The notes beneath the pieces are model-generated. The model saw only the letters and a list, made by a program, of their open reading frames with translations. It was not told the origin of the DNA and searched no databases. A stretch of DNA of 63,670 bases, the filler included, from Bigelowiella natans CCMP2755 (lineage: Eukaryota; Protista; Cercozoa), in the NCBI GenBank assembly GCA_000320545.1. It is 7 parts of 7 records of this genome, joined end to end, with 100 filler letters (N's around TTAATTAATTAA, not from the genome) between each part and the next. Parts side by side here need not be neighbours in the genome. Positions count along the whole stretch, not along the records: positions 17,631 to 36,650 come from ADNK01002113.1; 6 more parts are not named here. One strand, given 5' to 3'. The translations under genes and the position numbers were made by a program. This document shows positions 1 through 34,081 of this stretch, piece by piece (position 1 is the stretch's first letter; the number at the start of each line of letters is the position of its first letter).

Positions 1-1551
1 TGAATGCTCCTCCTATTCAACAACCGGAAGAGAGTTCTCAACATTATGTGATCGAGATATACAGGGACACAGTGATTCTCAGACAATGAGATAAGCGTGC
101 GGGCTGGCAAGAATTTGGGGAAGGGTGGGGAGATAGTGGTAATGTACAAACTTCTTAATCATTTTCAAGGATAGCAGTGTCCCAAAAGCAATCTTTAATG
201 TGTAGTGTGGAAAAAAAAGCCTTCACGGGCAGAGGAAGGTCCGAAGAAGGAAAAGGATACAATAAGATAGAAGAGGGGACCTACGCTTTACAGATCGCTT
301 GCTCTTCCCGGAAGAGATCGCAGAGAATTTTAGAAAAGGGGGGGGGGGGGGGGGAGGATTGTACCACGTCAACACAGAGAACTGCCTTCCGATGGCCCTT
401 TAGCGTCATGTCGAGACTGAGCGTCTCTGAATCATACAGCTTGATTACGGGGTTTCCTATTATAAGATAGAAGAACCATTTATCAGTGACAAGGTCCCCG
501 TGGTATGAATGCAGAATAATTTCCCAAAATCGTGGATAACGTTGTCTTTGAAACGGTGAATAACAGACGATCTTCTATTCTCCTTCTTGCTACCCCTCCC
601 TTCCCCCCCACGCCGATCATGGACGCGAAATCCTCCCTATGTAAGCACCAACCTCTCTCGACGAGAACGGTCTTGTTGATGGTGTTATAGTGCTGTATAA
701 AAGCGATCTTATTGTCGTGGTGGCTGTGATCCCGCACATGCTCGCTCGGAGCATACTCCTTCGTCTCTAAGTTGGCACCTAGAGAGGCAAGAAGAGGAGG
801 AGGGGAGGGGATATGAACGGCGCATGATTTTATAAAGGAATCTCTTATAAAAACAAAATAAAATTGAGTGGGCAGCAGCATCTGAACACCACTGAAGCTT
901 AGGTTAATAAGATTGCATAAAAAAAGGTAGAGCTCTGCGAGAGAGCAGCGAAACTCCATCCTCAATTGAGCTTTTTCCTGCAGCACTTCTGATAGTGCCG
1001 GAGAGACAACAGATGCGGCAGAGAGCTTGCACAGCATTCGTATTATTTTTGAACTATTTGTAACGGAGGTGGTCCTGGCGTTTCTCCCTCTAGGATGTGC
1101 GAGTCGTCTCACTTTTTTTACCGTGCATTTTGTGGTATTGGACAGCCATCTCTGCAAGGTGGTCCAGGAGCGTCTCCCACCGAATTACTTTCTGTCCTCG
1201 GATGTCTATATCCTGCGTAGGGGGGGGGGAGGGGGGGAGGGACGAGGCCAGTGTGGTTGGAAGTTAATAGCGGAACCGAGAACTTAATGAATGGAACGTT
1301 TAAGATTGAATAAGTGTTAATAATACGCGCAAAAAAGACGGTGAGTGCAGGTTTTCTCGCAATCACCTCGAACACGTGCATGAGCGCACTGAGGATCTCA
1401 TTCTTGTTCGCTAATGGGAAATACATCCCCAGTGTGTCGTAGAATATGGTGCAAAAGTCGGGTAGATCGACCTGAATTTTCAAAGAGAGATGTACACGAA
1501 GTGTCAAATACACACACACACACACACACACAGTACATTATATTTCTATTT

Positions 1552-1595
<44 letters not shown>

Positions 1596-1600
1596 CTAGT

Positions 1601-1643
<43 letters not shown>

Positions 1644-1912
1644 GCACCCCTCTCCGACCCAGCCGAAGAAACTTTCGCTTCAGTCTCGCAATCATCAAAT
1701 CGTCAATAGTCATAACGATGCGTAGAATATCTGCCAGCCTTTTCTTCTTCTGCTCGCTGTACTCGGAGCGCGGGGTAAGGCCTTTCTTCTGTTCTCGATC
1801 GCCTTTGTCCTTCTTTGCTGGCACGGCGGAGGAGTCGAGGGAGGATGACCCAGCATAGTGCCTGATTCAAAACGTAAAAATGTATCACCTTGCCCAACTA
1901 TATCTCTTCGAT

Positions 1913-1948
<36 letters not shown>

Positions 1949-2322
1949 TGTGTGTGTGTGCGTGACTCTTCTCCCGGAGTGATATGTTGGTTGCTACTCA
2001 GAGGAAAGAAGACAGCTCATTGGTGAAAGCAGGATGTTGAGCTTGATATATTCCTGCCCTCTCACTTAATTCAGCTATTTTACATCACTGCAGCAACCAA
2101 TAGCCCAAGGACGGTGCAAGCATAACCATCGCGAAGAGCAGGAGAGTGAATACGCGTGCGTGTTCTCGAATGTGAGTGTCTATGGCTCCACAGAATGAAT
2201 GCCACAACAGAATAGATATTGGTGCGTACATGCTGCCAGGATTGAGCTCCTCGTTGGCGAGCAGCTCTTTCTTTAGTAAAGCGTAAGCATCGTTCTCGGA
2301 GGACGTCTTTTAGTTCAATACG

Positions 2323-2365
<43 letters not shown>

Positions 2366-2437
2366 CACGCACGACATACAGTTAGTATTGTGGGTATGTA
2401 AATGTATATATGTACACACACACACACACACACATAA

Positions 2438-2474
<37 letters not shown>

Positions 2475-3316
2475 CATATATAATATTAAACGAATATCTC
2501 TCCCCTCCCTCTGGTGTGTGAGACCGATCAGTATCACAATCAGTTGCATATGTCTTTGGAGCATGTGCAGCATCGTCATCTATTTCTACTGTGAGGCTAT
2601 TAACCCTGTCATAGAGCATTCCCAGCTCCATCTTCGCCATTTGACGGTTACGCGAGCTAGTGCGCGACGACGCTCGCATCTGGCCTTTCGAGCGGCTTCG
2701 AGGCCTTCGGCCTGTACCAGAAAATCAGTGAGAGACGTGGTGTGTGCTCGGAAATATTTATTTAATATCGCAGGACGTGTCCTACCCTCGCTATCTCGGC
2801 CTCTTCGCTTCGAGGCTGGTTTACTCGCGCGCATTCTCCGAGAGACCAATGAATTAGCGACTTTCTTATTCTCGGATTTTTTCGCCTTTCCTGTACTTTT
2901 TTGCACTGATTGCAACATCGAAGAAATACCAAAATTGGATCAAACAATGAAAATACATCATATTTACAGCTTTATTTAGTATAGTTTATAGGGAAAAGTT
3001 TCAGTAGTAGTAGTAGTAGTAGTTTTTGTTGTTGTTGCTTGAGTTGGTCCTCACTTTGCTGGTCGCTGAGCATCTTCTTGGGGTCCATATTGCGTAAGTA
3101 GAGCTTCAGCATCTCGATCATGTTGCCTGTTGATTCCTCGTCCTGCAATCGGATTGAGTTTCGCTCCGCATGCATTAAAAGGTGATTAAGCGCAAGCTCT
3201 TGCTGGAAGTCTCCCAAATCGTCGTCATCGAGATATGCATCGATCACGGGATACTTAGCCTTTTTTCCTTGCCCGCCCTCATTGTTCCCGTCCGTGTTTC
3301 CTCCCTCGATATCCAC
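1..3316 (-). CDS. Multi-exon WD40-repeat protein, possibly with an EF-hand-like region; runs off the window start, 5' end uncertain
   Basis: Minus-strand exons separated by SSR-rich introns. The exon at about 363-460 reads GNPVIKLYDSETLSLDMTLKGHRKAVLCVDV (WD40 signature). VDLPDFCTIFYDTL...EILSALMHVFEVI at about 1290-1470 is EF-hand-like. Further coding blocks at 640-790, 880-1120, 1640-1850, 2080-2320, 2530-2920 and 3040-3316. Confidence 0.6.
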
Positions 3317-4248
3317 CTTGATGAGATTTAATGAATCAAGGTTAGTTATCGACGTGAATGAGGCACGATATTAGGTAGTATGCAAGGTGTATGTGTGAGA
3401 GAAAAAACACGGTCAAAGATGTTGCAATCCTTAACGGGATCTCGAAAAACTATGTTTATCATCGTGCGTGTGACCGTTGTCAAGTCAAAAATTGAGTACC
3501 TCGGGGACCTCCACTGGCCCATCATTCTCGCCCTCCATCAGAGGCGATGCCACAGGAAAACTCTTGCAGAGTCAGAGTTGAAAGCTCTGTTTCCTTGAGA
3601 CAGGCAAATTGCACATAATAGTTTCAGTTCGAGCACGAAATCCACCAACAACTGTCCTTGGCGTTCTAATGCACTAATAGGCCGTGGAAAAGGTAGTGGT
3701 GAGGACATATGGGGGTAGAATGCTTTTCAATTTGTTAACTATACATCAAACTGCGTCTTTTGGGAAGGGAGGTGAGAGGCAGCAGCGAGACCAAAGTGGA
3801 AACCTATGCTCGAGGGGCAACAACAACGCCTATGCCTTTATTCAGACTTTGTTGCCGCTGTTTCTAGCTCGAAGGAAGGGTGATTTAGAAAAAATAATGT
3901 CACATTGGTATGACGCTTTCCAATAACGGCAAACGATCCCGTGGCACACTTAGATGCGTTTTTCTCAAGGCCGTTTCAGTAACTGTGCAATAATTCCCTC
4001 TTCATATTTTACTTTTGCGACAACAACACTTGTTGTCGCAGAGCATTGAAGGAGTATGTGTGCGTTACACTTCGTACGAGGTTCTTTCTTGTGCCTGCGC
4101 TCGTGGTAGTTTGACCGACAATTAATACCAAATGACGAACGGGGATATTGCTGAAAGAAACAACCTATCTGGGATGTCGTAGCTCCGGAACATCACATAT
4201 TTTTTCGATCAAATATCCGACAAGATTCCAAACCTTCGCCCCTTCTTC

Positions 4249-7200
4249 ATGCTTCTGTTTCTCCTCGGGTTGGGGTTCCTCAGCCACGAAGTCGATGCCC
4301 AGATCGCTGCTACGGCTACCTTCGACTATGGAACACTATCAGGCACTATCAGGTTTTCTCAGGTAAGATTTTTTTTAACTTTGACCCTTTCAGCGAGAAG
4401 TAATCTTCTGTTTGGCAGAACTCGGCTTCGGACTCCACCATCATCACAGTGAATCTGACGGGAATCACGGAAAACAACAACAAATGGCATGTTCATGTTT
4501 TTCCCGTGGAAGACGGATGTCATTCCTCGTCCACCGGAGGTACGCACATCTCATCTCTCTCGATACGTACTGCTAGATTCCGTAAACTTGGACGCCCCTC
4601 AGGGAGTTGATATGCTCGTTAGGTCACTACAACCCCCTTAACGTGGCTCTAGGATACGCAACTCCATGCGTTCCCCAATCAGTTTGCGAAATAGGAGACC
4701 TCTCAGGAAAGCATGGACAGTTTTCAGCAGCGATTGTGAATGCAGAGTACAATGATACCAATTTGCCTCTCTTCGGCGTGAACAGCATTGTTGGGCGTTC
4801 AATTGTGATTCACGCCAGTGGTGGAGCTCGGATGGCCTGCGCGACAATCATGCCTGACGGACTCGTGAAAACTGTGAGAGCTGGTTTCGATGGTGAAGCC
4901 TTGCTGGGAAGCGTGACTCTGATGGAGTACGGCCCATCCAATGCGAAACAGACTATGGTGCTGGCCAATGTCAACCTGCAGTCTTCATATCAGTCGCGTT
5001 ACGGAGATAGCGGACCAGTTTCTTGGAACGTATATTCGGTGCATCCAAACGCTACCCTGGGATTCGACTACCTTTCAACAGGTACTACTCGTTGCTGGCC
5101 TAAATTCATATAAGCAGGGACGGGGCAGATACATATATTTTTTGTTTCCTTCAGGTGCTTCAGGCGGAGGCTGCGATGTCATGGAAAACAGCGCATCTGT
5201 GTTCAATACAGCTACGATCGGCAACCTAACTCTGAAACACGGGCTGCTCACTCTAGGATCCAAGTCTTTCTTCACCGACAGCAACCTTCCATTGAGTGGA
5301 GCCAATTCCGTAGGTGCGCTGGGATTATCTATTGGACGCCTTGGATGTGCAACCATCGGGCGACACGTGCGAGCAGAGTTTGACATAAATGGTGTCTACG
5401 GCTATATTGAAATGGTCCAGGCTTCTGAGACCGATACGACGGCTGTTACAGTTAGCCTCGACGGGCTCTCCGACCTCGGCAATAAGTGGCATGTACATGA
5501 ATTCCCTATTATAGACGGCTGTCAGAGCAGCTCTGTGGGTGGGCACTACAATCCTTACGACGTTTCTCTCGGCTACTCCACCCCGTGTATAGACATGTCA
5601 GTGTGCGAGGTGGGAGACTTGTCCGGGAAGCATGTGAGGCTTTCCTCGGCCGCCGTGATGCAAACGTACAATGACACCAATCTACCCCTGAGTGGTAAGT
5701 ATTCCGTTGTGGGGAGGTCGATCGTACTTCACAGAAACAGCGACGGATCTCGATACGCGTGTGCTACAATTTTGCCTACTCTAAGGTTCAAGACGATCAG
5801 AGCTATATTTGACACGGATGTGCGCGGGGTGATGACTTTCAGTCAGGAGCGTTTCGACTCTAAGGCAGATTCTTGGGTGCTCGCTGATATTGAACATAGC
5901 ACCTCTACGTCAAGCATCCAGCATAAATATCACGTCCATGTCAATCCAACAAGTATTGACAACCCCACCGATTGTGGGTCTAGCGTGACAGGAGGCCATT
6001 GGAATCCATCCATGGTTTCTAATTCACACTGCAGTGCAGGAAACTGGTCTTTATGCGAGATTGGCGATCTAAGCGGTAAGCATGACAAAATCGCTATTCC
6101 ATCCTCAAATTCCTCCAAAGTTTTCTACACGGATAATACTCTTCCGCTCTCGGGAGCGTATTCTATCGAATCAAGATCCATTGTGATCCATGCGGCCAAT
6201 GCAGGGGCTGCACGAATTGCATGCGCCACCTTGGGCAAGTATGCTAGGGCCACGTTTCCCTCCTACGGTTCTATCGATTTCCTTCAAGCCAGCGAATATA
6301 GCAGCAGCCAAATCACTGTTCTGTTGCCTGGATTACCCGCAAGTGTTACAGGATGGGAAATCCGATCAAGTCCCTCCACAGGCGGATTATGCGACTCTCT
6401 CATTTACTCGCCAGGTTCTCTCTTTAATCCGAACACAACATCGCTGGACAACAACGCAGTCGGGGCGCTAACTGCGAAATTTGGCAACCTCGTCGCAAGT
6501 GGCAATTTCACAGACGCAAACTTGCTATTTGGTAAGAGCTCCGTCGTAGGTCGTAGCGTAGTCCTCCTCGATGGCACCACGATTCATGCGTGCAGCACTA
6601 TTGAAGGGACACTAACGCCTTCAGTGTTGAGAGCTAGCTTTTCTGGCTACGATTTGGATGGAACAATCCTCATCAAACAGCCTCGTTCAGACCCTCGATC
6701 CGAGACTGTCGTCAGCATTTCCTTGCAATATTCAGCGCCTCATGCCGCGGCCCAGACTGTGAATCACAAATATCATGTGCACGTCAACCCTGTGGATTCA
6801 ACACAAACTGGCACATCGCGTTGCGGCTCCGCCTCCACTGGGGGGCATTGGAACCCTAATGCTGTGGGCAACCAGTATTGCGGTGCTAATGAGGATGAGT
6901 GGGCTCATTGTGAAGTTGGAGACCTTTCAAATAAGCACGGACTTCTTTCCTTTCCTGCGGTAGGGAGCGGACGCGTGGTATACAGCGATAATATGTTGCC
7001 CTTACAGGGTGCATGGCTCATATCCGGGCGTTCCATAGTGGTTCACGCCGAAAACTCTGGAAGCAGTCGCATCGATTGCGCCACGCTGGAAGTTGCTGAT
7101 CCTGGTGCGACATTCTACGTGACACTCACGATCCAGGGAGACATCAGCCAGGTTGACTCGTCTTATAGATCTACATTCAAATCCAATTTGGCTTCGTTGA

Positions 7201-17630: not shown

Positions 17631-22659
<5,029 letters not shown>

Positions 22660-24026
22660 GTTCACAGGCTGTGAAGGCAGGCAGCAGGGGCGCAACCAAA
22701 ATTCGCGGGAAAACCGAAGCTCATAAAAAACGAAAACTCGAGTAAAAAACCAGAAAAAACACCCAATTTTCTCTTAAAAAAGCAAAGCGAACTTCAGAAC
22801 ATCGGAAAATTCGAAAAATCTGGGATTCACCTGCGGGAACCGGTATCTCGGGGGATCCCCCGAGACTAGATTAGTCGACGCAAGAAGCACGTAGTGCACA
22901 TAGATCTACAGAACAAATCCAGCAAATTATTTTAACTAGATCTCGAACAGTTCGCACATGTGGTACCTCGCCGAAAAGGTAGGAGCACGTGTTGCCATTG
23001 TTCAACAGCAACTTAGGTTCTCTTTCGGTGGTTTTGCCCAAAATAGGGATCGAACAGCTTCACCATGATGTCCGTGGCCGCATGACGTACACGTTCTGGT
23101 TCCACGTTGTTGAGAGTCCTTCGACGTTTCTCCTGTGGTTTCCAGCACTATTTCATGTCTCTCAGACCTGGAGCTAGCAGAAGACCTGTGGAAATGGCCT
23201 GCTGAAATCCAACATCATTTGGCCGATGGAGTCCAATGTGCTCATTTCCCATGTTTGGTGGTCATGGCGATCTGAAAAAATAAATCTTCCAAGATCGGCA
23301 AGCAACCAGATGTACATTTATCACAACCACTGTGCCCCACAGAAATGCATACGGGTTCTGCAAAGCTCTGGGTGCTTCTGGATTCTCTGAATCTCAGCAT
23401 ACGCAGAGACAAATCGGAGTGATGTTTGAGACCATTCGCCTAGATTTTGAAGCATGGAGCGATTTCCTAATTTCCGTAATTCCCTCACTAATGTCACGTT
23501 TTTTTCTGAATGCCCTGCAATCTGCGCGAAACTCTTAACATTGTTGGAAAACGATCCATTATTGGAGTAGAAATTTGGAGTTGTGAAATTAGTTCCCCAT
23601 GGAAAAACCTCGCAAGCTGTGTCTCACGAGTCCGCTCATTTTCTCTTAGAAATTGACCAATATGTTTTGAGCATTGAACAAAAAGCAACGGGTCATGAAC
23701 TTCATCTATTTTCCATGGAATTCATGGGTCGCAAGGCCAACAAGCCCACGAACTACAGGACGTCGGAAGATAAAGGTGATCTATCATATCCAGAAAGATG
23801 TGAAACCAGTCACAGCAAAACCCCTCGTGTTTGCATGAATAGACAAGCGAATCGATACAAGTAAGAAAGAAACGTCCTAGGTTCCGATACATCTCTGCAG
23901 ATGCATGCTGACGATCGGTCTGGATATTGCAGTTTGCCTGAGTCTTACCTGCTGTACTCGAGCGTGGGACCCTACTTCTCGTGCCCTTCCCTGCTCATCG
24001 CGCCAAAACCGGAAGGCCACAGAATT

Positions 24027-25423: not shown

Positions 25424-27565
25424 AGTAGTGAATCGTTTTGGGGAGGACGATGACGGAGTCAGCTGCTCGTTATTTGTTCGATAGTCATTATTTTGTCAAT
25501 TAAGGTTGTATATAATCGAGCCCTATCCATTGCTCACGTGTTCCTAGTCACTCGCTACTGAAGGCAGTTTCTACTAACCATTGCCAGCTGTGTCTGCAGC
25601 CACCACAGCGTTTGTGTTTCCACCCGCAAATTTTACCATTGTGGGCAGCGAGTTGGAGGCTTGGAGATTTCAAAAGTGTGTACAGTCCGAGGAATGAACA
25701 AAATTCAGCAGGTAATTTTTTATTGCTCGAAGCAAAAGGCAATTTACGCTCCCCGACAGTTTTTTGTTCGTTCGATTTGGTCGGGAGGTCTCCGTGTGTA
25801 AATTCTAAGTGTAATACCCTTGTCGTATATGCCGCACGTAAAGATAATCTGTCGTCGCGTGGCGTGCGTGTCGATCAGCACACTGCTATATTTTCATCTA
25901 AACTCTTTTTGAAATAGAAATTCCTAGTATTCTAGCTTGATGCTGCATGTTGCGAATGATATGACGGAACGGCATGCACATATACATGCACGAGCTATAT
26001 ACATATGCACATATTACGTATCATAAGAACAGCTATCACATACGCATATGCGCAATATAGACGGCGTCGAGCGTGTCGTGCATACTGGACTCTTATATAT
26101 AAAATACGCACATGGTCGACCTGCTACTGTGTCTAAAGCGTGGATGTGAGATGTATATAAGTGAACGATGTAGGCATGTGTACAGCATGCACGAGTTGAA
26201 TTCTATTTGACTGCATGCAATGTACATGTTAGGGTACCCAGTAACCTTCCTCTATAATTATTATAGCTGGTAATGGCGTGGCGCGTACGCACATGGCCGT
26301 TGTAGACATCTCCCTTCTATCTACAGTCCTTGCAGAGCGGCAACGCCACTACATATTACGTACATAGTACATACCACTGTCCTAAGCGTAATCCTCACCA
26401 CATACAACACACGTGCGCGATGGCATGCATGTGAAAACAATCAAATCAAATAACGGTTCCTGATGATAAATGGAATCTACATGACAATTCAAAAGCTAAC
26501 ATTTTGTTAACTGTACGCCTAGATTCTTGGCTGAATAATACGAACTAGTAAGCTTAAATCTTTACAGATAACGTTTCAAATCTATACAAATAAATTTTAG
26601 ATCCTCGGAGATAAGACATGGGTGAATGTTTCTGGAATATATGATGTATTTTATATGATATATACGTTTGTTAGAGAGAGAGAGAGGATCTTTGTATTAT
26701 ATGATTTTTGAGGATCTTTGTAATATATGATTTTTTTCAAATCTCAAACGCTTAGGGTTCCGAGAAGGGGCGGCGCTCATAACATGATTTTATGTTATTA
26801 TTCTAGATGTGATGTCGTAGCGGATTTTCCCAGGTGGATTCTCCTGTGTTTGCATTGTGCCAATACGCCTGTCCCGTGACTTCGTCCTCATATTCTGTCC
26901 ACCCATTGCTTCTCTCGGCTGCTCTCGTGCTCGTGATCTGGCCTGGAGTCATGCAACCGTTGGTTTTTCCTGTACGATGGGGAGTAAAGTAATGATAAGA
27001 TGAATGAACAAGATGGCACCAGAAAAGATGTGTTGAAACCCCTGAACTTTTGTGTACATGCCCTCATATTTAATCATCGTTTCGCGGCACGACCTTCACG
27101 CGCATTCGGACTTGTCGAACGCGGAGATGCCGAAATGCTTCTCGGGGAGAATTCTTGAGTGTTTCCGAGCATAACGTCATCCGTGACTCCGAGGGTCCCC
27201 ATTCGTCCGATGGGAGGTACACCCACGGCCCCTTCATTGCTAAAAAAGATGCGATATGAAGAGGAGGGGGAGGAAATTAAATGATGCACCAATTGCCTCC
27301 TTCCTACTGTGTATCATGCATGCACGTTGTGAATGGCGCGGAATAGGTTACCTCGATGTTTGTGTTTCTCCTCCTGAGGGGCCACAGGCTTCGTTCATTA
27401 TCTTTACGACTGCCTGCTTGTCGTTGCTAAGCTGTCCTTGAACTGTGACTCTGCCAGCCAGAAACTACAAACGCAAGTATATCAAGCACACGTTATTTTG
27501 TGGATTTTACCACGATGACACACAACTGTATTGCTTACTCACCTCTCTTCTCCCCCCCCCCCCTC

Positions 27566-29247
27566 TTACACTTCTACATAGGTACTAACCTGCTTGCTCG
27601 TCTTAGTTTCAGCTGCGATGTTTCGACGGTAGAGGTTCCATCCACATCCAATAAGAATGATAACGCTTCCGACAGCAGCAATAACGACTATCGCAACTTG
27701 CGAGTAATCCGAATCGTCCACCTTCTCGCTGTCCTCCTTACTTTCATCACCAATGTCGATGAGGGTGGGGGAGGATACGCTCTCTACCGTCAAGTTTAGT
27801 GCTCGGGTAAGATTCTGAACCGGTGTTGTCGCGACCTGGCTAGCTAGTGACTCGCCGCTGTTGTCAACGAAGGTGATCTCTGCGACAATGCTGCCCGGGG
27901 AGAAGACAACTACGAAGCTGCTTTCTTCCACGCCAAGCATGTCTGCGAGCCTTCTCTTGAAGCGCCGGCGGAACTGATTATTGACTGAGTCGAAGCTCCC
28001 CGTAACCCGAACTCGCAGCCGGTACTGTTTCCGCGCGGTTGGCGCCGTGGTGGGTGCTCGAGATGGTCTTGGCGTCGGTGCTGGAGCCGGGGAAGGGCGC
28101 GGAGTCGGCCTAGTGCTGATGCTAGTGGTGGGCCGAGCAGTCGGTTCAGAAGTATCTGAGCCTGGAGACGGGCTCGGCGTTGGTCGCGGAGTTGGGCCAG
28201 GAGACGGCCTTGGCGTTGGTCGCGGAGTTGGGCCTGGAGACGGCCTTGGCGTTGGGAATGGGGTTGGCCTTGGCGTTGGGCGTGGTGTTGGCCCGGGAGA
28301 TGGCATTGGCGTTGGGAATGGGGTTGGGCCGGGAGATGGCCTTCGCGTAGGTGTGGACGTCAAAGGGTCCAGATTGGCTTCCCCCCATGCTGGCGTTGTC
28401 CCCACACAACTCTTGCAGGCGTTTGAGAGCCACCAGTGCGGAGTCTCTGCGGGGGAGCGAGCCTTGTTCGCCTCGAAGCTGCCGCAGTCCAGGCACGCAT
28501 CGTTGAACGACCAGCGCGGCTTCGGCACTGCCGGAGTGCTGATGGGCAGCCAGGAGATGACCCGCGAACGAACGTAGCAGGTTGAGTAGAAGATAGGGTC
28601 TTTGGCGTCATTGGTTGTGAGGAACTCCGGATCCGTGATCGTAGCTGCGCGTGCCTCCACCCCATAGCAAACCATAGGACGCTTGCTCTTTGGAGCGCTG
28701 CTGGCGATCGCCGTGTGTTTGGCCTCTGACCGAGCGACGGAAATCTTCTTAAAGGCGAGGTAGCGGCCCCCGTTCCCGCGCGCTCGTAAGCGGAGAAATC
28801 GCCCCTTCTTACCGGCACAATTAACTAGGATGGGACAGAGCATCTCACCACGGCGACGATTTTTGGATTCACAGTTTTGTGGTCTCGTTACCACCTCGCA
28901 CACGTCCTCATCGGCGCTACGGCATTGATTGTCTGTGCATGCTACGTCGCTGAGCGCGACAACAACCCCCTCGTCCGATCCCTTAAAAGGTCCCCACGCA
29001 ATGGCAGGGCCGGTCGGCGAAAACGTGTTGGCTGGGAGGCCGTTAAGCGACTGCTGGTAGAGGTCGAAGATGGAGAAATATCCAGTATTTTTGTTCGAAA
29101 GTACGTGAAGCCGATTCGGTTTGTAGCACTTCTGCTTCGCAGTGAAGAACCACCAGTGCGTACATCTCGGCTGGAAAGTGGCACCCGAAGTCTGAGGACA
29201 GAAAGGGTAATTACTGATGGGTATGGACGACATACATTCATGTATCG

Positions 29248-29292
<45 letters not shown>

Positions 29293-29510
29293 TCTTTGCG
29301 TGCGCGTCGGTAGGATATTTGAGGGGTGCCCAACCTCGTCAGGAAATTTAGCGGTCGAGTAGCTGTTCGTTCGTGGAAGATCAATAGAGACATAGCCAAC
29401 GCCGGAATTCTGATCGTCAAGCTCCAGCTGCCACCAGGCTGCTTTTGTGTCCATGGCTTTTGGCGCCCACGCCTCGGGGTATGAATCTTGCAGACGATCG
29501 ATCTACACAT

Positions 29511-29566
<56 letters not shown>

Positions 29567-30111
29567 CTGATTATATTTATATTTAGGCATGCGTGTGCGA
29601 AAACTTGCACATCACAAAGCCTTCTTTGGTTTAGCACAGAATTCAGCACTACCTGGATCCAGTGTATGTCAGGACACAGCAGCTCTTCTTCGGAGCCAGT
29701 GGTGTAGCGATCCCGCACGGTCCCGCCCAACGACGTCAAGGTCAAGCGCCCGTCGTTCACCTCCACGGTGATGTACTTCGTCGTGTACATCTCGTCGTTT
29801 TGGTTGCGCAGGAACTTGGCGCTCTCCATCGCGCACCCCACCCCCCGGTAAAGGCCATCGAAGCCCCCGGTGTAGATCGTGACGACGTACACCCCGTTAG
29901 CGACTGCTATTTCCCACTCATTCATGGCGCCGCCCGGGCACTTGGTTCTCCAGGAGCCCTTCGGCGCCTTCCCCGTTAGAACACCGGTGTTAGACGTGTC
30001 GATTGTCGGCCGGTTTGTCTGGATGGCCATATTAATCGCGCATTTCCATCCGTAGCTGAGTCCTGAGTGCATTCGAACAGACACACACTTATTCACTACT
30101 CTGGTGCGCGC

Positions 30112-30152
<41 letters not shown>

Positions 30153-31381
30153 CGAAAGCTTGTACTACCATTGCCACGATCTCCAAACGTCTTTCCGCTG
30201 TCAATATTCCAGCCAGTGCCAAGATTGATGGTGAAGGGGTTGCCATTGTACACAGGATTTTCGGGCTGGAAGCTGATCTTTGTGCGATAATGGTTACTGT
30301 CGGTCCAAGTTGCGGGATTTGTGTACCCGGCGGGGGCGGACACACTAGGAGAGGGAGGATCGTCCGGCTTCTCATACCTGGGCAAGGATAATTGAAAGGG
30401 GGTAGGTAAGATCGCGAGTGACGAGAAGAAAGGGGACAAGTCAAAGGAAACCTCCCCCCCTTCTCACCAACTCATCATTTATCCCCACTTACAGAGTCCA
30501 GCCCGTCGTCGCAATAAGATTGGTGTTGCTCTTTCGGCAGACCCGAACAGTTTTGCCGCTACCCTTGGAAAGGGTACTGATATCGGCCCCATTGTGCTGC
30601 CAGGCAATGGCCCAGCAGTCCCCGTGGATGCACTCATCGAGCGCATCGATGAAGTTAGAGAAGGTCGGGCCTCGATTGCAGCGCGTATCGGCCCTGACGG
30701 CCTTGGCGCTGTTAACAAATCGGGTCCAATTGTACGTAGAGGACGTCTCCGTGCCGGTGTGCTTCATGTAGGGCGACGAGAGGCTAAACGGGAAAATATT
30801 AGGGCGGGGGGGAGCACGAGGAGGAGGTTGAAGAAATCAAGCGAGTTGCAAGTTGCACTACTCTCATTGAGGGGCAGGGGGGGGGGGGGGAGAGAGGAGA
30901 GAGAAAGGAGAGAGAGGAAGAATACGTTTGCAGCATCATTACCCAACGCCGATATAGTCCCTCGGCCATCGAAGACCGGTGACGTCAGGCTCGGTGACGG
31001 GGGAGAACGGGATGGCCCTAACATCACTCACGCTTGCAAGGGATGCGGGGGCAGGAAAGTGCGCAAGTGGCACGACGTTTAGCCCGAGGTTCCCAAGAGC
31101 CTCTCCCCTGCCTGCAATCTCGAGCTGATTGAGGCAAGTGCTCACGTTGTCAGTAGCAGGGTAGATACCTGCATGATATTTGATATTGTATTCACCGCTG
31201 CAAGTTGGCCTTAGAACCCCCCCCCCCCCTGAATCTCCTACATCCCTCTCCCTAAGGCTGATGTTCCTGCTGCGTGTTCCTCACCGGTGGCGATGCCGGC
31301 TGGCTGCACAAACTGACAGTGGTCGATTCTGTTGATTTCGTACGTTCCTGTGTCGTTGCCGTAGATAAGTTCCTGCGGTAC

Positions 31382-31426
<45 letters not shown>

Positions 31427-33142
31427 GTGTGTGGTGTATAGCGAAGCAGAGTAGAACCTGGCTGAAATGCGCATGCACATCGACAGCGTCATAGTAGCCG
31501 TTCCAGAACCAATGCACGATGTGGTGGGCGTTCGTGCCCTGTCGACGGGGCACTGGCATGCAGATGATGTCGGCATCGCGAGGCATATGCGCAATATGCG
31601 GGTATCTCATCGCCCCGATGATCCATGGGTACTGACATAACAAAACGAGAAATCAATTAGTCCTACGTCGGGTGCTGCATCGTCGTGTCGCTACATATGC
31701 TGCAAGAAAGTGCAACCTTTGGATTGTCGTATATAACGTAGCGATCCTCCTGCCGAAGATTGCTCTTCCACCGATGCAGGGTTCCGGAGGGATACTTGGT
31801 GTGATCGCAAAAGTCGGCGTCCGTTGGCTGCACTGCCCCGGTGAAATACGCTGTGTTCTGGCATGCAGCGCCGTCGCGACACCAGTGCAGTCGCGGCTTA
31901 GTAGCTGCCTGATTGGCCGATGCGGGAGCGCTGTCGACGTAGTCCTTCACCCAGTCCTTGTACTCATTCTGCCATATGTAGTCCTCGTCGTCGCCGTTGA
32001 TGATTACAAAGTAGGTGTCGCGGCCGTGGCCCGTCGCCCATTTGACGGCCATCTCCTGCCCGGGCCCCAGCTGAGCGTGCACGTCGGTGGATCGACGCTG
32101 GCGGAAGGGATTCGTCGTCGACGCCTCGAACATTGCCCGCCCGGGACTACGGAGCCAGTTATGCGCCGCTGCGGGGCGCGCTTGCAGGAGGAAGGCCGTA
32201 GCTGCTGTCAGCGCCGGGGACGCACCCCGAAATAATGCCCCCCCGCGCGCGCCCAGCAACCCCATGACTGCGAAAAGAATTGCTGGTGCGAATGCAGCTG
32301 ATGCCTTGACAGGAACGCTATCAGCCTGAGAGTGGCGATTACTACTATCGGGAATTCCAGCGGTTTTTGACGCAGCAGCCCCTGCTGCCGGTTCTGTAGA
32401 CTCCTTGTTGACACTGGACGGAGCAGCTTGCAGATTGGCCGCCTGCGACTCTTTACACGGACAGAAACGCCTCGCGGATGGATGGCTGGAGTAGCAGCTG
32501 GCCTCGAGGCGATAAGACGCGCCGGGAGCTGAGACGCACAGAGACTTTGGAGAAGAGCTGGGGGACAGGGAGGAGCTGATGCCGTTGTAGAAGCACGCCC
32601 CGGTATTGTCCATGGCCGGCGCTACGGAGGCGCACGAGGGCTTATACGGTAGTGGGCAACCAGAGATCGATGCAAGCGTGGACTCCATTCCTGTCGTTAC
32701 AACACAGACACAACACACAAGGCGAACGAGAATGTCGCATTCAGATGAGGGCTGCAGAATTTGGAAGAGGAAGGAGGGGTTTGGAAGGCAGTTGTCAGGT
32801 CCTTATTTACCGTTGGGTGTGTTGACTGCTGCAGCCCTCAGCGCTGCCCCATCGCATACTTTACTTCCTCCAGCCATCGATGCACAGAATTCAGAGCAAG
32901 AGACGCCGAGTGGGGCCACGCCCCAGGAGGGAGAGGGCGAGGAGGAAGGTGGAGATGCTTCGGTGAGCTGGAGGTCCGTACCCGTGCCTGGAAAGTCGCC
33001 CGTTGGAATCGCTTTTCGGATGTTGGGCTCGACGCCGTTAGGGTAGTAAAAATAGCCTACGATACGCGCGCGCGCGCACACACACACGCACACACATGCA
33101 GATTCCCAAATGACCACAAATATAAATTGAAATGTAGCACAC

Positions 33143-33179
<37 letters not shown>

Positions 33180-33916
33180 GGGTGGCGATCAAGCCCAGCG
33201 GGTTTGACAGGAAGACGTACCAGTATTCGCTGGGCCTATCTTAATGAGAGCATGAAAAGTAATCGTGCCAGTTCCTGCGGGGGGTGCTTTAAAACGGAAC
33301 TCAACCTGCAACGGCTTCAAGTCGGCCTGGGCGTGCATGATACATTCCTGCCATAGCCAGTGCCAACAACACCACAGGTATGTTAGAACTACAAACATAA
33401 GTAAAATTATTGGCCGGCCACTCACTAAAAATACATATTCCATTTTCATAAGACCACCCATGTACGGAAATGGTTATGCATATGCATACAAAGATTCCGT
33501 TAGATTCGAGAGACCTTTCCCACTGTCGGGTTCCAAAACTCCCGGTTCTCGGCGTCATTGCCGGTGGTCTGCCACTGGCCGACATGGCGAGAGGAGGAGC
33601 TGGACGCATGCAGGACCAGCCCGCGATACTTGAACGGGTAGCGATTCACTTCGAGCACAACTGTTATCCATTCCTGGGGCACGTAGGATGTTCTGCCGGT
33701 ATCCTTGAGGCGCAGCGTATACATGCTCGAGTATTTCGGCCGCCCAGCCCAGTTCATCGACAAGATGACGTTCTGCCGGCAGTCGAGGAAGTCACCCTTA
33801 TGCCAGTCTCGAGGGTCGCAGCCGATATCGGCCATCGCGTCAAAGCAGTACGGAGCGCCGGAGCCTAGCTTTCCGTTGGACGCGGCATCTGTTGCGACAA
33901 ACAAGTTATATGCAAT

Positions 33917-33953
<37 letters not shown>

Positions 33954-34081
33954 TTATTTATACAAATAAGCTCGGGTATCAAGGGTCATCGTCTCATTTC
34001 AAAATGATAGAACTAACCGGTAAGTGAGGCGATTGCTCCGAGGCACAAGACCCAAACGGCAATCTGCTCGATCCTGCGCAT
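27566..34081 (-). CDS. Large cell-surface polyprotein: signal peptide, Reeler, Cys-rich domain, TM/GPI-like segment, internal signal peptide, His-brace (LPMO-like) domain, CBM-like beta-sandwich, F-type lectin/F5-8C-like domain, Pro/Thr stalk, SEA-like domain, TM
   Basis: ATG at 34081 (MRRIEQIAVWVLCLGAIASLT). About a dozen GT-AG exons; the junctions I checked are phase-consistent (e.g. 32811^32690 G|GA ATG; 31717^31631 K|Y). Reeler motifs YVPQEWITVVL..FKYRGLVLHA..VGQW..CIMH..K..VEFRFKAPPAGTGTITFHAL. TM VAIVVIAAVGSVIILIGCGW. The cytoplasmic tail may splice on to further exons down to about 27070. Confidence 0.8.
28040..28360 (-). repeat. Coding tandem repeat, PTPRPSPG/PTPF mucin-like stalk
   Basis: 12/24/36-nt units such as GGAGACGGCCTTGGCGTTGGTCGCGGAGTTGGGCC recur on the + strand. 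The minus strand translates to (PSPGPTPRPTPR)n. Confidence 0.9.

Follow-up and report, generated by a model that had tools for sequence, protein, structure and literature searches.

Proteins that need a free N-terminal histidine are, to our knowledge, assumed to lie directly behind an N-terminal signal peptide, and mid-chain positions of such domains are usually dismissed as annotation errors. Host signal peptidase cuts the structural polyproteins of pestiviruses, flaviviruses and alphaviruses at internal signal peptides. The bunyavirus Gn/Gc polyprotein is processed likewise (PMC7926653, PMC4974537). Here we describe a gene of Bigelowiella natans CCMP2755, contained in a stretch of 63,670 nucleotides joined from seven records of assembly GCA_000320545.1 (the window), whose product carries a membrane hairpin with a second half that resembles a signal peptide and ends directly in front of an invariant histidine. 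The gene lies on the minus strand, at 34231-26455, in the part of the window that comes from ADNK01002113.1. Judged from its sequence and that of its relatives, it probably encodes a cellular polyprotein in which co-translational cleavage by signal peptidase gives two membrane proteins from one frame of 1795 residues, a reading to which we assign a probability of about 65%.

The processing logic is a known viral one, here in a cellular, widely conserved and otherwise undescribed protein family. Literature searches covering lytic polysaccharide monooxygenases (LPMOs) and the histidine brace, internal signal peptides and polyproteins found no link of a domain beginning with histidine (His1) to an internal signal peptide or a polyprotein. 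The same searches found no work on LPMOs in chlorarachniophytes, and a paper on the iron response of Bigelowiella (PMC7883536) does not mention such a protein.

One transcript and one frame encode both halves

The spliced protein was studied on a public transcript contig, L002. L002 is a 5886-nt contig from the Joint Genome Institute (JGI) with an open reading frame (ORF) at 151-5538. Aligning it to the window with blastn and refining the junctions gave 16 exons between 34231 and 26455, each in a block of 98-100% identity, and tblastn of the protein P0156 supports the same transcription unit. All 15 introns are GT-AG and measure 76-167 nt. The coding sequence runs from an ATG at 34081, with an in-frame stop codon upstream, to the stop at 26805-26803. 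Its product is identical to P0156, a 1795-residue "complete" ORF from an MMETSP transcript that is also found on L002. P0156 was retrieved by a word-based search using P0001 of Lotharella globosa, the best match of the search with exon 5, and its N-terminus and the 130 residues preceding the histidine are identical to translations of the window exons.

Exon 5 (32690-31717, 974 nt) corresponds to L002 962-1935 with 100% identity, gapless and unspliced. It encodes the last part of a Cys-rich domain, then a low-complexity linker and the hairpin, and finally 149 residues that begin the His domain; the frame is open on the minus strand, with no stop, from 32802 to 31666. Upstream it is spliced in frame to exon 4 (33056-32811; L002 716-961), and the L002 alignment places exon 6 (31631-31458) directly downstream. 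An earlier note on this DNA had described a single uninterrupted exon joined in frame to the exons before it, and both points hold. The note had also named transcripts that show two genes, or that lose the hairpin by splicing, among the observations that would overturn its reading; L002 spans all 16 exons and leaves the hairpin exon unspliced.

Intron 4 (32810-32691) contains an in-frame TAA and must be spliced out. The Cys-rich domain is encoded across the boundary of exons 4 and 5, where it is collinear with the Lotharella transcript protein P0001. The upstream part therefore runs into the His domain without a stop codon, and none follows intron 4 ahead of that domain; on these structural grounds two separate genes are excluded. 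Both halves are encoded in one ORF on one assembled mRNA.

The introns have some features of their own. Intron 4 is exactly 120 nt long and in frame but for its one TAA, so that tblastn reads straight through it; its retention would truncate the protein ahead of the hairpin. Dinucleotide microsatellites (CT, AC/AT, AG, TA, TG and AT) occur in six of the 15 introns, one in each, at 29248-29295, 29505-29582, 30114-30150, 31383-31424, 33145-33184 and 33920-33962. Paralogues in Amorphochlora have much longer, TA-rich introns, and their genes span 27-37 kb.

A hairpin and a signal-like segment precede the histidine

The low-complexity linker (aa 352-401, within exon 5) leads into TM1, a hydrophobic segment of sequence AAFAPAILFAVMGLLGA (aa 402-418; 32298-32248, minus strand like all features of the gene). 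This transmembrane (TM) segment has the highest hydropathy in exon 5, with a Kyte-Doolittle (KD) value of 2.31 over 15 residues, and is the proposed stop-transfer element. An Arg/Gly loop of eight residues, RGGALFRG, follows (aa 419-426; 32247-32224) and is proposed to be cytosolic. The second segment, ASPALTAATAFLLQARPAAA (aa 427-446; 32223-32164), is less hydrophobic than TM1, resembles a signal peptide and ends in RPAAA. The proposed signal-peptidase site falls after Ala446, between 32164 and 32163, and His447 (codon 32163-32161), an invariant alignment column that opens the sequence His-Asn-Trp ("HNW"), would become mature residue 1. An internal methionine, Met413, lies inside TM1 with its ATG at 32265-32263. 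The succession of linker, hydrophobic segment, RGGALFRG, second segment and histidine had been reported in the earlier note, and its coordinates were verified on the minus strand.

Relatives were collected by a phmmer search with exon 5 (window 31717-32688, minus strand) against 1.84 billion representative proteins, which gave 286 cluster representatives at E <= 1e-3. The histidine was located in 139 of them and scored as mid-chain at position 100 or above and as N-terminal at position 60 or below. It is mid-chain in 96, N-terminal in 37 and in between in six, a 96:37 ratio that is biased towards fused forms by the Cys-rich part held in the query.

The residues before the mid-chain histidine are strongly constrained. 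At -1 all 96 relatives have a small residue (A in 85, G in 7, S in 4), and -3 is occupied by A in 57, V in 16, T in 10, S in 6, C in 6 and G in one. On these counts the small-residue pattern at -1 and -3 is far beyond chance. Mean hydropathy across the same 96 sequences is high from -17 to -6, dips at the polar positions -5/-4 and shows a second plateau from -39 to -27; lysine and arginine peak at -22/-21, and aspartate and glutamate hardly occur between -45 and -3.

Among 99 internal-type relatives, a slightly larger set, a signal-type hydrophobic core was found in 97, and an equivalent of TM1 in 82 when a KD value of at least 1.6 over 15 residues was used and in 91 at a threshold of 1.3. The double hydrophobic segment before HNW, whose retention in homologues the earlier note had proposed to check, is thus kept in most of them. 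The loop between the two segments has a median length of 10 residues, contains 179 K+R against 23 D+E over the whole set, and carries at least one lysine or arginine in 88 of the 99. The hydrophobic core before the histidine is only about 13 residues long and, judged by this length, is too short for a permanent span. By sequence pattern these features make up a cleavable signal peptide, with its n-, h- and c-regions, placed behind a stop-transfer segment and a positive-inside loop.

The fused layout recurs in other organisms. Full-length fused ORFs are present on transcript-sized contigs for P0002/P0151 (1829 aa on 6025 nt), P0005 (1680 aa on 5159 nt), P0011, P0015, P0018 and P0020; we take them to be transcripts because the contigs exceed their ORFs by little. 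In the Amorphochlora genome, P0158 carries a fused annotation. Named sources of relatives are Lotharella, Amorphochlora, Norrisiella, Bigelowiella and Mataza, all Cercozoa, and a stand-alone "HTW" subfamily comes from the choanoflagellate Diaphanoeca. Five mid-chain relatives (P0017, P0039, P0064, P0067 and P0087) have a single clear hydrophobic segment before AxA|HNW and do not fit a two-span topology; they may be fragments, assembly errors or proteins of another arrangement.

Stand-alone paralogues and the probable history of the fusion

In stand-alone paralogues the same histidine follows directly after an ordinary N-terminal signal peptide. An example is P0006 of Amorphochlora, which has no Reeler gene upstream. 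Because these paralogues place the histidine behind a signal peptide, the mature N-terminus is expected to be His in both layouts. We examined the distribution of the two layouts on a tree of the His domain, which is unrooted as to its true root and in which a few stand-alone labels are artefacts. Fused forms occur in both deep halves of the tree, and stand-alone forms branch off among them at six or more positions, so the fusion has been kept over a long divergence.

Three paralogues, P0158, P0004 and P0159, lie on one contig of Amorphochlora amoebiformis (BAAHQB010000079), where P0004 was examined in L001 1-6800. The annotated start of P0004 lies inside TM1, and on the tree this protein groups as the sister of the fused P0159. 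The frame of its first exon stays open ahead of the annotated methionine, and immediately before the gene, on the same strand, comes one for a Reeler domain. P0004 is probably a fused gene that annotation has split. The fused layout likely originated by fusion of a tandem pair, a membrane-anchored gene and a downstream secreted gene, with both targeting signals kept.

Proposed processing and its alternatives

In the proposed mechanism, a first signal peptide would take the Reeler/Cys-rich part into the lumen of the endoplasmic reticulum (ER). TM1 would stop transfer and leave the basic loop in the cytosol, and the second hydrophobic segment would restart translocation and be cut by signal peptidase after Ala446. 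Product A would then be the Reeler/Cys-rich ectodomain, anchored by a hairpin of TM1, loop and second segment (TM2), and product B a type-I surface protein with the invariant histidine as its first residue. In the predicted topology of the precursor, the Cys-rich domains flanking the hairpin should be lumenal and the C-terminal WW domain cytosolic. The WW tail argues for a cytosolic C-terminus, which requires an even number of spans between the ectodomains. The idea that one ORF yields two membrane-anchored products had been put forward in the earlier note together with an LPMO identity for the second. Its first element gains from the single mRNA and from the conserved succession of TM1, basic loop and AxA|His, with the cleavage itself predicted; its second element, as set out below, found no support.

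The histidine could instead be an ordinary internal residue of an uncleaved, three-span precursor in which the hairpin serves only as an anchor or hinge between ectodomains. This would agree with the finding that the HNW domain is not tied to any family needing a free His1. However, it leaves the small residues before the histidine in 96 of 96 relatives unexplained, a core of some 13 residues with a polar c-region is too short for a stable span, and in the stand-alone paralogues the position of the invariant histidine coincides with where an N-terminal signal peptide is predicted to end; we consider absence of cleavage unlikely. The His-domain protein might also be made separately, from an internal promoter or a start at Met413, with the fused frame incidental or a minor isoform. 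The earlier note had raised this start, which would give an N-terminal signal peptide of 34 residues. The ATG is indeed present, the stretch from Met413 to the AAA has the n-h-c shape of a signal peptide, the Amorphochlora annotation begins P0004 at a methionine in the equivalent place, and 66 of 98 relatives have some methionine between -45 and -13. For this gene an internal start is compatible with the data. As a mechanism for the family it was rejected, since no methionine is conserved (frequency at any single position at most 0.07) and 32 of the 98 have none in that interval. Further points against it are the frame that some 100 diverged sequences keep open across a linker of poor conservation, the full-length fused transcript of the window gene itself, and the signs of split annotation at P0004. 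Separate production of the His-domain protein is, overall, quite unlikely.

Two further alternatives concern the anchor of product A and the integrity of the gene model. Cleavage could occur as proposed with TM1 acting as a glycosylphosphatidylinositol (GPI) attachment signal, so that product A would be lipid-anchored and not hairpin-anchored. Small residues, S-A-A, precede TM1 in the window, and the upstream part resembles a GPI-anchored ectodomain with a low-complexity stalk. However, the usual spacer is missing between this candidate omega site and the hydrophobic stretch, and a GPI signal is normally found at the very C-terminal end of a protein, not, as here, ahead of a basic loop and another segment; we regard lipid anchoring as very unlikely. 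That the fused frame is an artefact of chimeric transcript assembly, or of read-through between neighbouring genes, is highly improbable. De novo short-read assemblies can join neighbours, and one genome annotation does split a paralogue, but in the window no intergenic DNA separates the halves, which share exon 5 with no in-frame stop, the Cys-rich domain crosses the exon 4/5 junction, and the same frame recurs in many independent assemblies from different organisms. A chimera was rejected on the basis of the shared exon, the open frame and the domain across the junction.

Several observations weigh against the polyprotein reading itself. L002 is a short-read assembly, and an extra, shorter transcript starting inside exon 5 remains compatible with it. 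Cleavage before His447 is predicted from sequence statistics only. A single clear hydrophobic segment precedes the histidine in five to eight relatives, which breaks the parity argument there, and the bias of the phmmer query bears on how often the fused layout occurs. Finally, the idea of a metal site has no backing from known families by sequence or structure search. Cleavage of one precursor into two membrane proteins remains the reading we prefer. A more ambitious version, in which a widespread protist polyprotein family would free the His1 of a new copper-brace domain together with a 1:1 redox or metal-donor partner at the same membrane (the Reeler/Cys-rich product or, in some lineages, a cupredoxin), is possible but in our view doubtful.

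The HNW domain is an uncharacterised beta-sandwich

The HNW domain comprises mature residues 1 to about 240 (aa 447 to about 690; 31285..32163). It is encoded by exon 5 from 32163 onward, exon 6, which contains the segment HHIVHWFWNGYYDAVDV (31526-31476), and exon 7 (31381-31285). His1, Arg9 and His46 are invariant columns in both of our alignments, A1 and A2. The second histidine, His46, lies in a T-G-H-G motif (32026..32028). At least 90% of alignment rows keep Trp3, Pro19, Gln36, Tyr75 and Pro80, and a GYYD motif is conserved along with Tyr75. An AlphaFold2 model (L002:1489-2220, built on the 71-row alignment A2) has a pLDDT of 88.8 and a pTM of 0.84 and is confident over residues 1-210. 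It predicts a beta-sandwich with two helices, in which His46 occupies a turn between strands 37-44 and 49-56.

The earlier note had labelled this domain an LPMO, and we compared it with known families by sequence, profile and structure. Pfam gave no LPMO_10 match; of ten proteins, one matched AA9 faintly (E 0.065). Sequence and profile searches of the PDB matched nothing to the domain and returned no LPMO. Two AlphaFold models were searched with Foldseek against the PDB (twice) and BFVD, and no search gave a significant match. For the model with pLDDT 88.8 the best PDB matches were unrelated Ig-like folds (E 6e-3, TM-score below 0.31), and the BFVD search found no viral similarity. LPMO-type entries were among the non-significant Foldseek matches (4yn2, 4opb, 9i1u, 6ibh and 8c5n, which represent fusolin, an AA13, two AA10s and X325; E 0.03-0.08, TM-score 0.15-0.28).

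For a direct profile comparison, 73 bacterial loci were fetched with a degenerate HGYVESPASR pattern, yielding 62 AA10 catalytic domains, of which two were verified as LPMO_10. HHalign of HNW against these 62 domains gave a probability of 1% (P 0.055). In local alignment, only the last beta-hairpin of HNW (177-210) pairs with AA10 (134-172). Greedy mode adds the N-terminal motif H-x-[YW]-[VL]-x-x-P-x-(x)-R to the match but leaves the second histidine unaligned. With no Pfam, PDB or Foldseek support and an HHalign probability of 1%, the LPMO identity is not supported. The HNW domain is an uncharacterised beta-sandwich family and is not to be filed as an LPMO.

A metal site can still be considered. 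We give about even odds to a putative site of the histidine-brace type formed by the His1 amine and His46, and if there is one, copper would be its likely metal. We retain the idea because a histidine brace is the only known reason for an invariant histidine at a signal-peptidase site.

Upstream and C-terminal parts of the precursor

The precursor opens with an N-terminal signal peptide (aa 1-21, MRRIEQIAVWVLCLGAIASLT; 34019..34081), read from the sequence and identical to the N-terminus of P0156. Exons 2 and 3 (33888-33515 and 33347-33221) encode a Reeler-like domain at aa ~25-190 (33221..33888), defined through relatives. This region is 53-75% identical to P0152, the longer member of the 90% cluster of P0003, and P0003 passes the Pfam Reeler model (PF02014) with 27.7 bits (the cutoff is 21). 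Of 41 relatives, five score above this threshold, the best at E 8.9e-10, and the family profile matches the reeler structure of spondin-1 weakly (E 0.03). The window's own copy gave no Pfam Reeler match, either in any window exon or in the spliced N-terminal 446 residues. The Reeler exons reported in the earlier note are therefore borne out through the relatives and not by the window sequence itself.

The Cys-rich domain follows at aa ~240-351 (32449..32904); it ends in RFCPC and is interrupted by intron 4. Its family profile matches the C-terminal domain of GnT-V/MGAT5 (PDB 5zic and 6yjq) at E ~6e-7; apart from this and the weak spondin-1 match, the family profiles had no PDB hits. Upstream of the hairpin, 89 of 95 mid-chain relatives carry the Cys-rich module and 67 also a Reeler-like domain; most of the rest are 5'-truncated. 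In P0007 (residues 1-60) and P0049, a cupredoxin of the plastocyanin/azurin type (PF00127, E 5.5e-5; C-x-P-H-x-x-M) sits upstream of the Cys-rich module and hairpin, which may point to a role of that product in copper or redox chemistry.

Downstream of the HNW domain, exons 8-13 (27590..31168) encode a large ectodomain extending to aa ~1400, a Pro/Thr-rich stalk and TM3; stalk and TM3 together occupy aa ~1400-1638, with TM3 at aa 1619-1638 (27697-27638). These exons are collinear with P0001 and P0152, and Pfam has no matches for their ectodomain and stalk. The coding part of exons 14-16 (26803..27464) encodes a cytosolic tail that ends, just before the stop, in a WW domain (PF00397) at 26904-26821, with a Pfam E-value of 6.3e-8 and 33 bits against a cutoff of 26.9. 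This was the only match in a Pfam scan of all window exons and the spliced protein, and plain phmmer of the window's downstream part against the PDB gave only low-complexity and WW-domain matches. The WW tail suggests coupling of the surface protein to partners of the PPxY type, for example endocytic or ubiquitin-ligase adaptors.

Genomic surroundings

The neighbouring gene, at ~17631-22700, encodes tubulin-specific chaperone D, with matches to PF25767 (ARM_TBCD_2nd) on the minus strand at 19475-19966 and 20021-20629 (E 6e-44 and 2e-47). Flanking ORFs contain long homopolymer runs of the amino acids V, L, S, H and T. GC content falls to 41-46% across 22.1-27.6 kb. The top of this range, 26455-27590, holds the 3' untranslated region and last three exons of the polyprotein gene, and no gene was identified in this analysis in the low-GC DNA below 26455. 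Between 17631 and 36650 there are no tRNA genes and no Rfam families at the gathering threshold.

Comparison with known systems

Confirmation of the proposed processing would have several consequences. It would establish that cells, and not only viruses, employ internal signal peptides to obtain two membrane proteins from a single ORF. Here conservation of the mid-chain position of the His domain goes along with that of precisely the features by which a free His1 would still arise, which would give annotators reason not to split or distrust such models, as apparently happened to one Amorphochlora paralogue. A large protist cell-surface family of 286 representatives would be defined, with a His1/Arg9/His46 signature open to copper and oxidation tests, and the gene would offer a natural test case outside virology for the interplay of helical hairpins and signal peptidase. 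Were the doubtful copper-brace version also true, the Gn/Gc strategy of viruses would have its first cellular counterpart, and His1 metalloproteins would gain a new fold class.

The individual domains resemble known proteins in part. Reeler-domain proteins include spondin-1, reelin (at its N-terminus) and FRRS1/SDR2. The upstream domain of relatives passes the Pfam Reeler model, and their profile weakly matches the spondin-1 reeler, whereas the window's own copy is too diverged for Pfam, and here a GnT-V-C-like Cys-rich module and a TM hairpin follow and another protein is co-translated. The Cys-rich module shares with the C-terminal domain of GnT-V/MGAT5 an aligned cysteine pattern that ends in R-x-C-P-C. 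It differs in lacking a glycosyltransferase catalytic domain and would instead form a stand-alone stalk beside the membrane.

Like LPMOs and other histidine-brace proteins (AA9-AA17, X325/Bim1, CopC and PmoB), the HNW domain has an invariant histidine exactly at a predicted signal-peptidase site; a second invariant histidine and a predicted beta-sandwich are further common features. Likeness to AA10 extends to the N-terminal motif aligned above and to a C-terminal hairpin of the form H-[IV]-[IV]-..-W ... [FY]-Y-x-[AC]-[IV]-D-V. In contrast to AA10, the second histidine of HNW lies 45 residues after His1 and does not align with that of AA10, and unlike LPMOs the HNW domain is often mid-chain. 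Redox partners of LPMOs, such as cellobiose dehydrogenase, are encoded separately. The cupredoxin upstream in P0007 and P0049 raises the idea of a redox or metal partner encoded upstream, but most HNW members carry a Reeler domain in its place.

The closest parallel is with viral polyproteins of the Gn/Gc type. As in these, one ORF encodes an upstream ectodomain anchored by a TM segment, then a short cytosolic loop, and then a second hydrophobic segment, bearing an AxA-type site, that would be the signal peptide for the protein after it; two membrane proteins in fixed 1:1 amounts are predicted here as well. The differences are that the Bigelowiella gene is a spliced nuclear gene of a cellular organism, that its layout is conserved in many protists (Cercozoa, with further relatives in metatranscriptomes), and that the downstream product would start with an invariant histidine.

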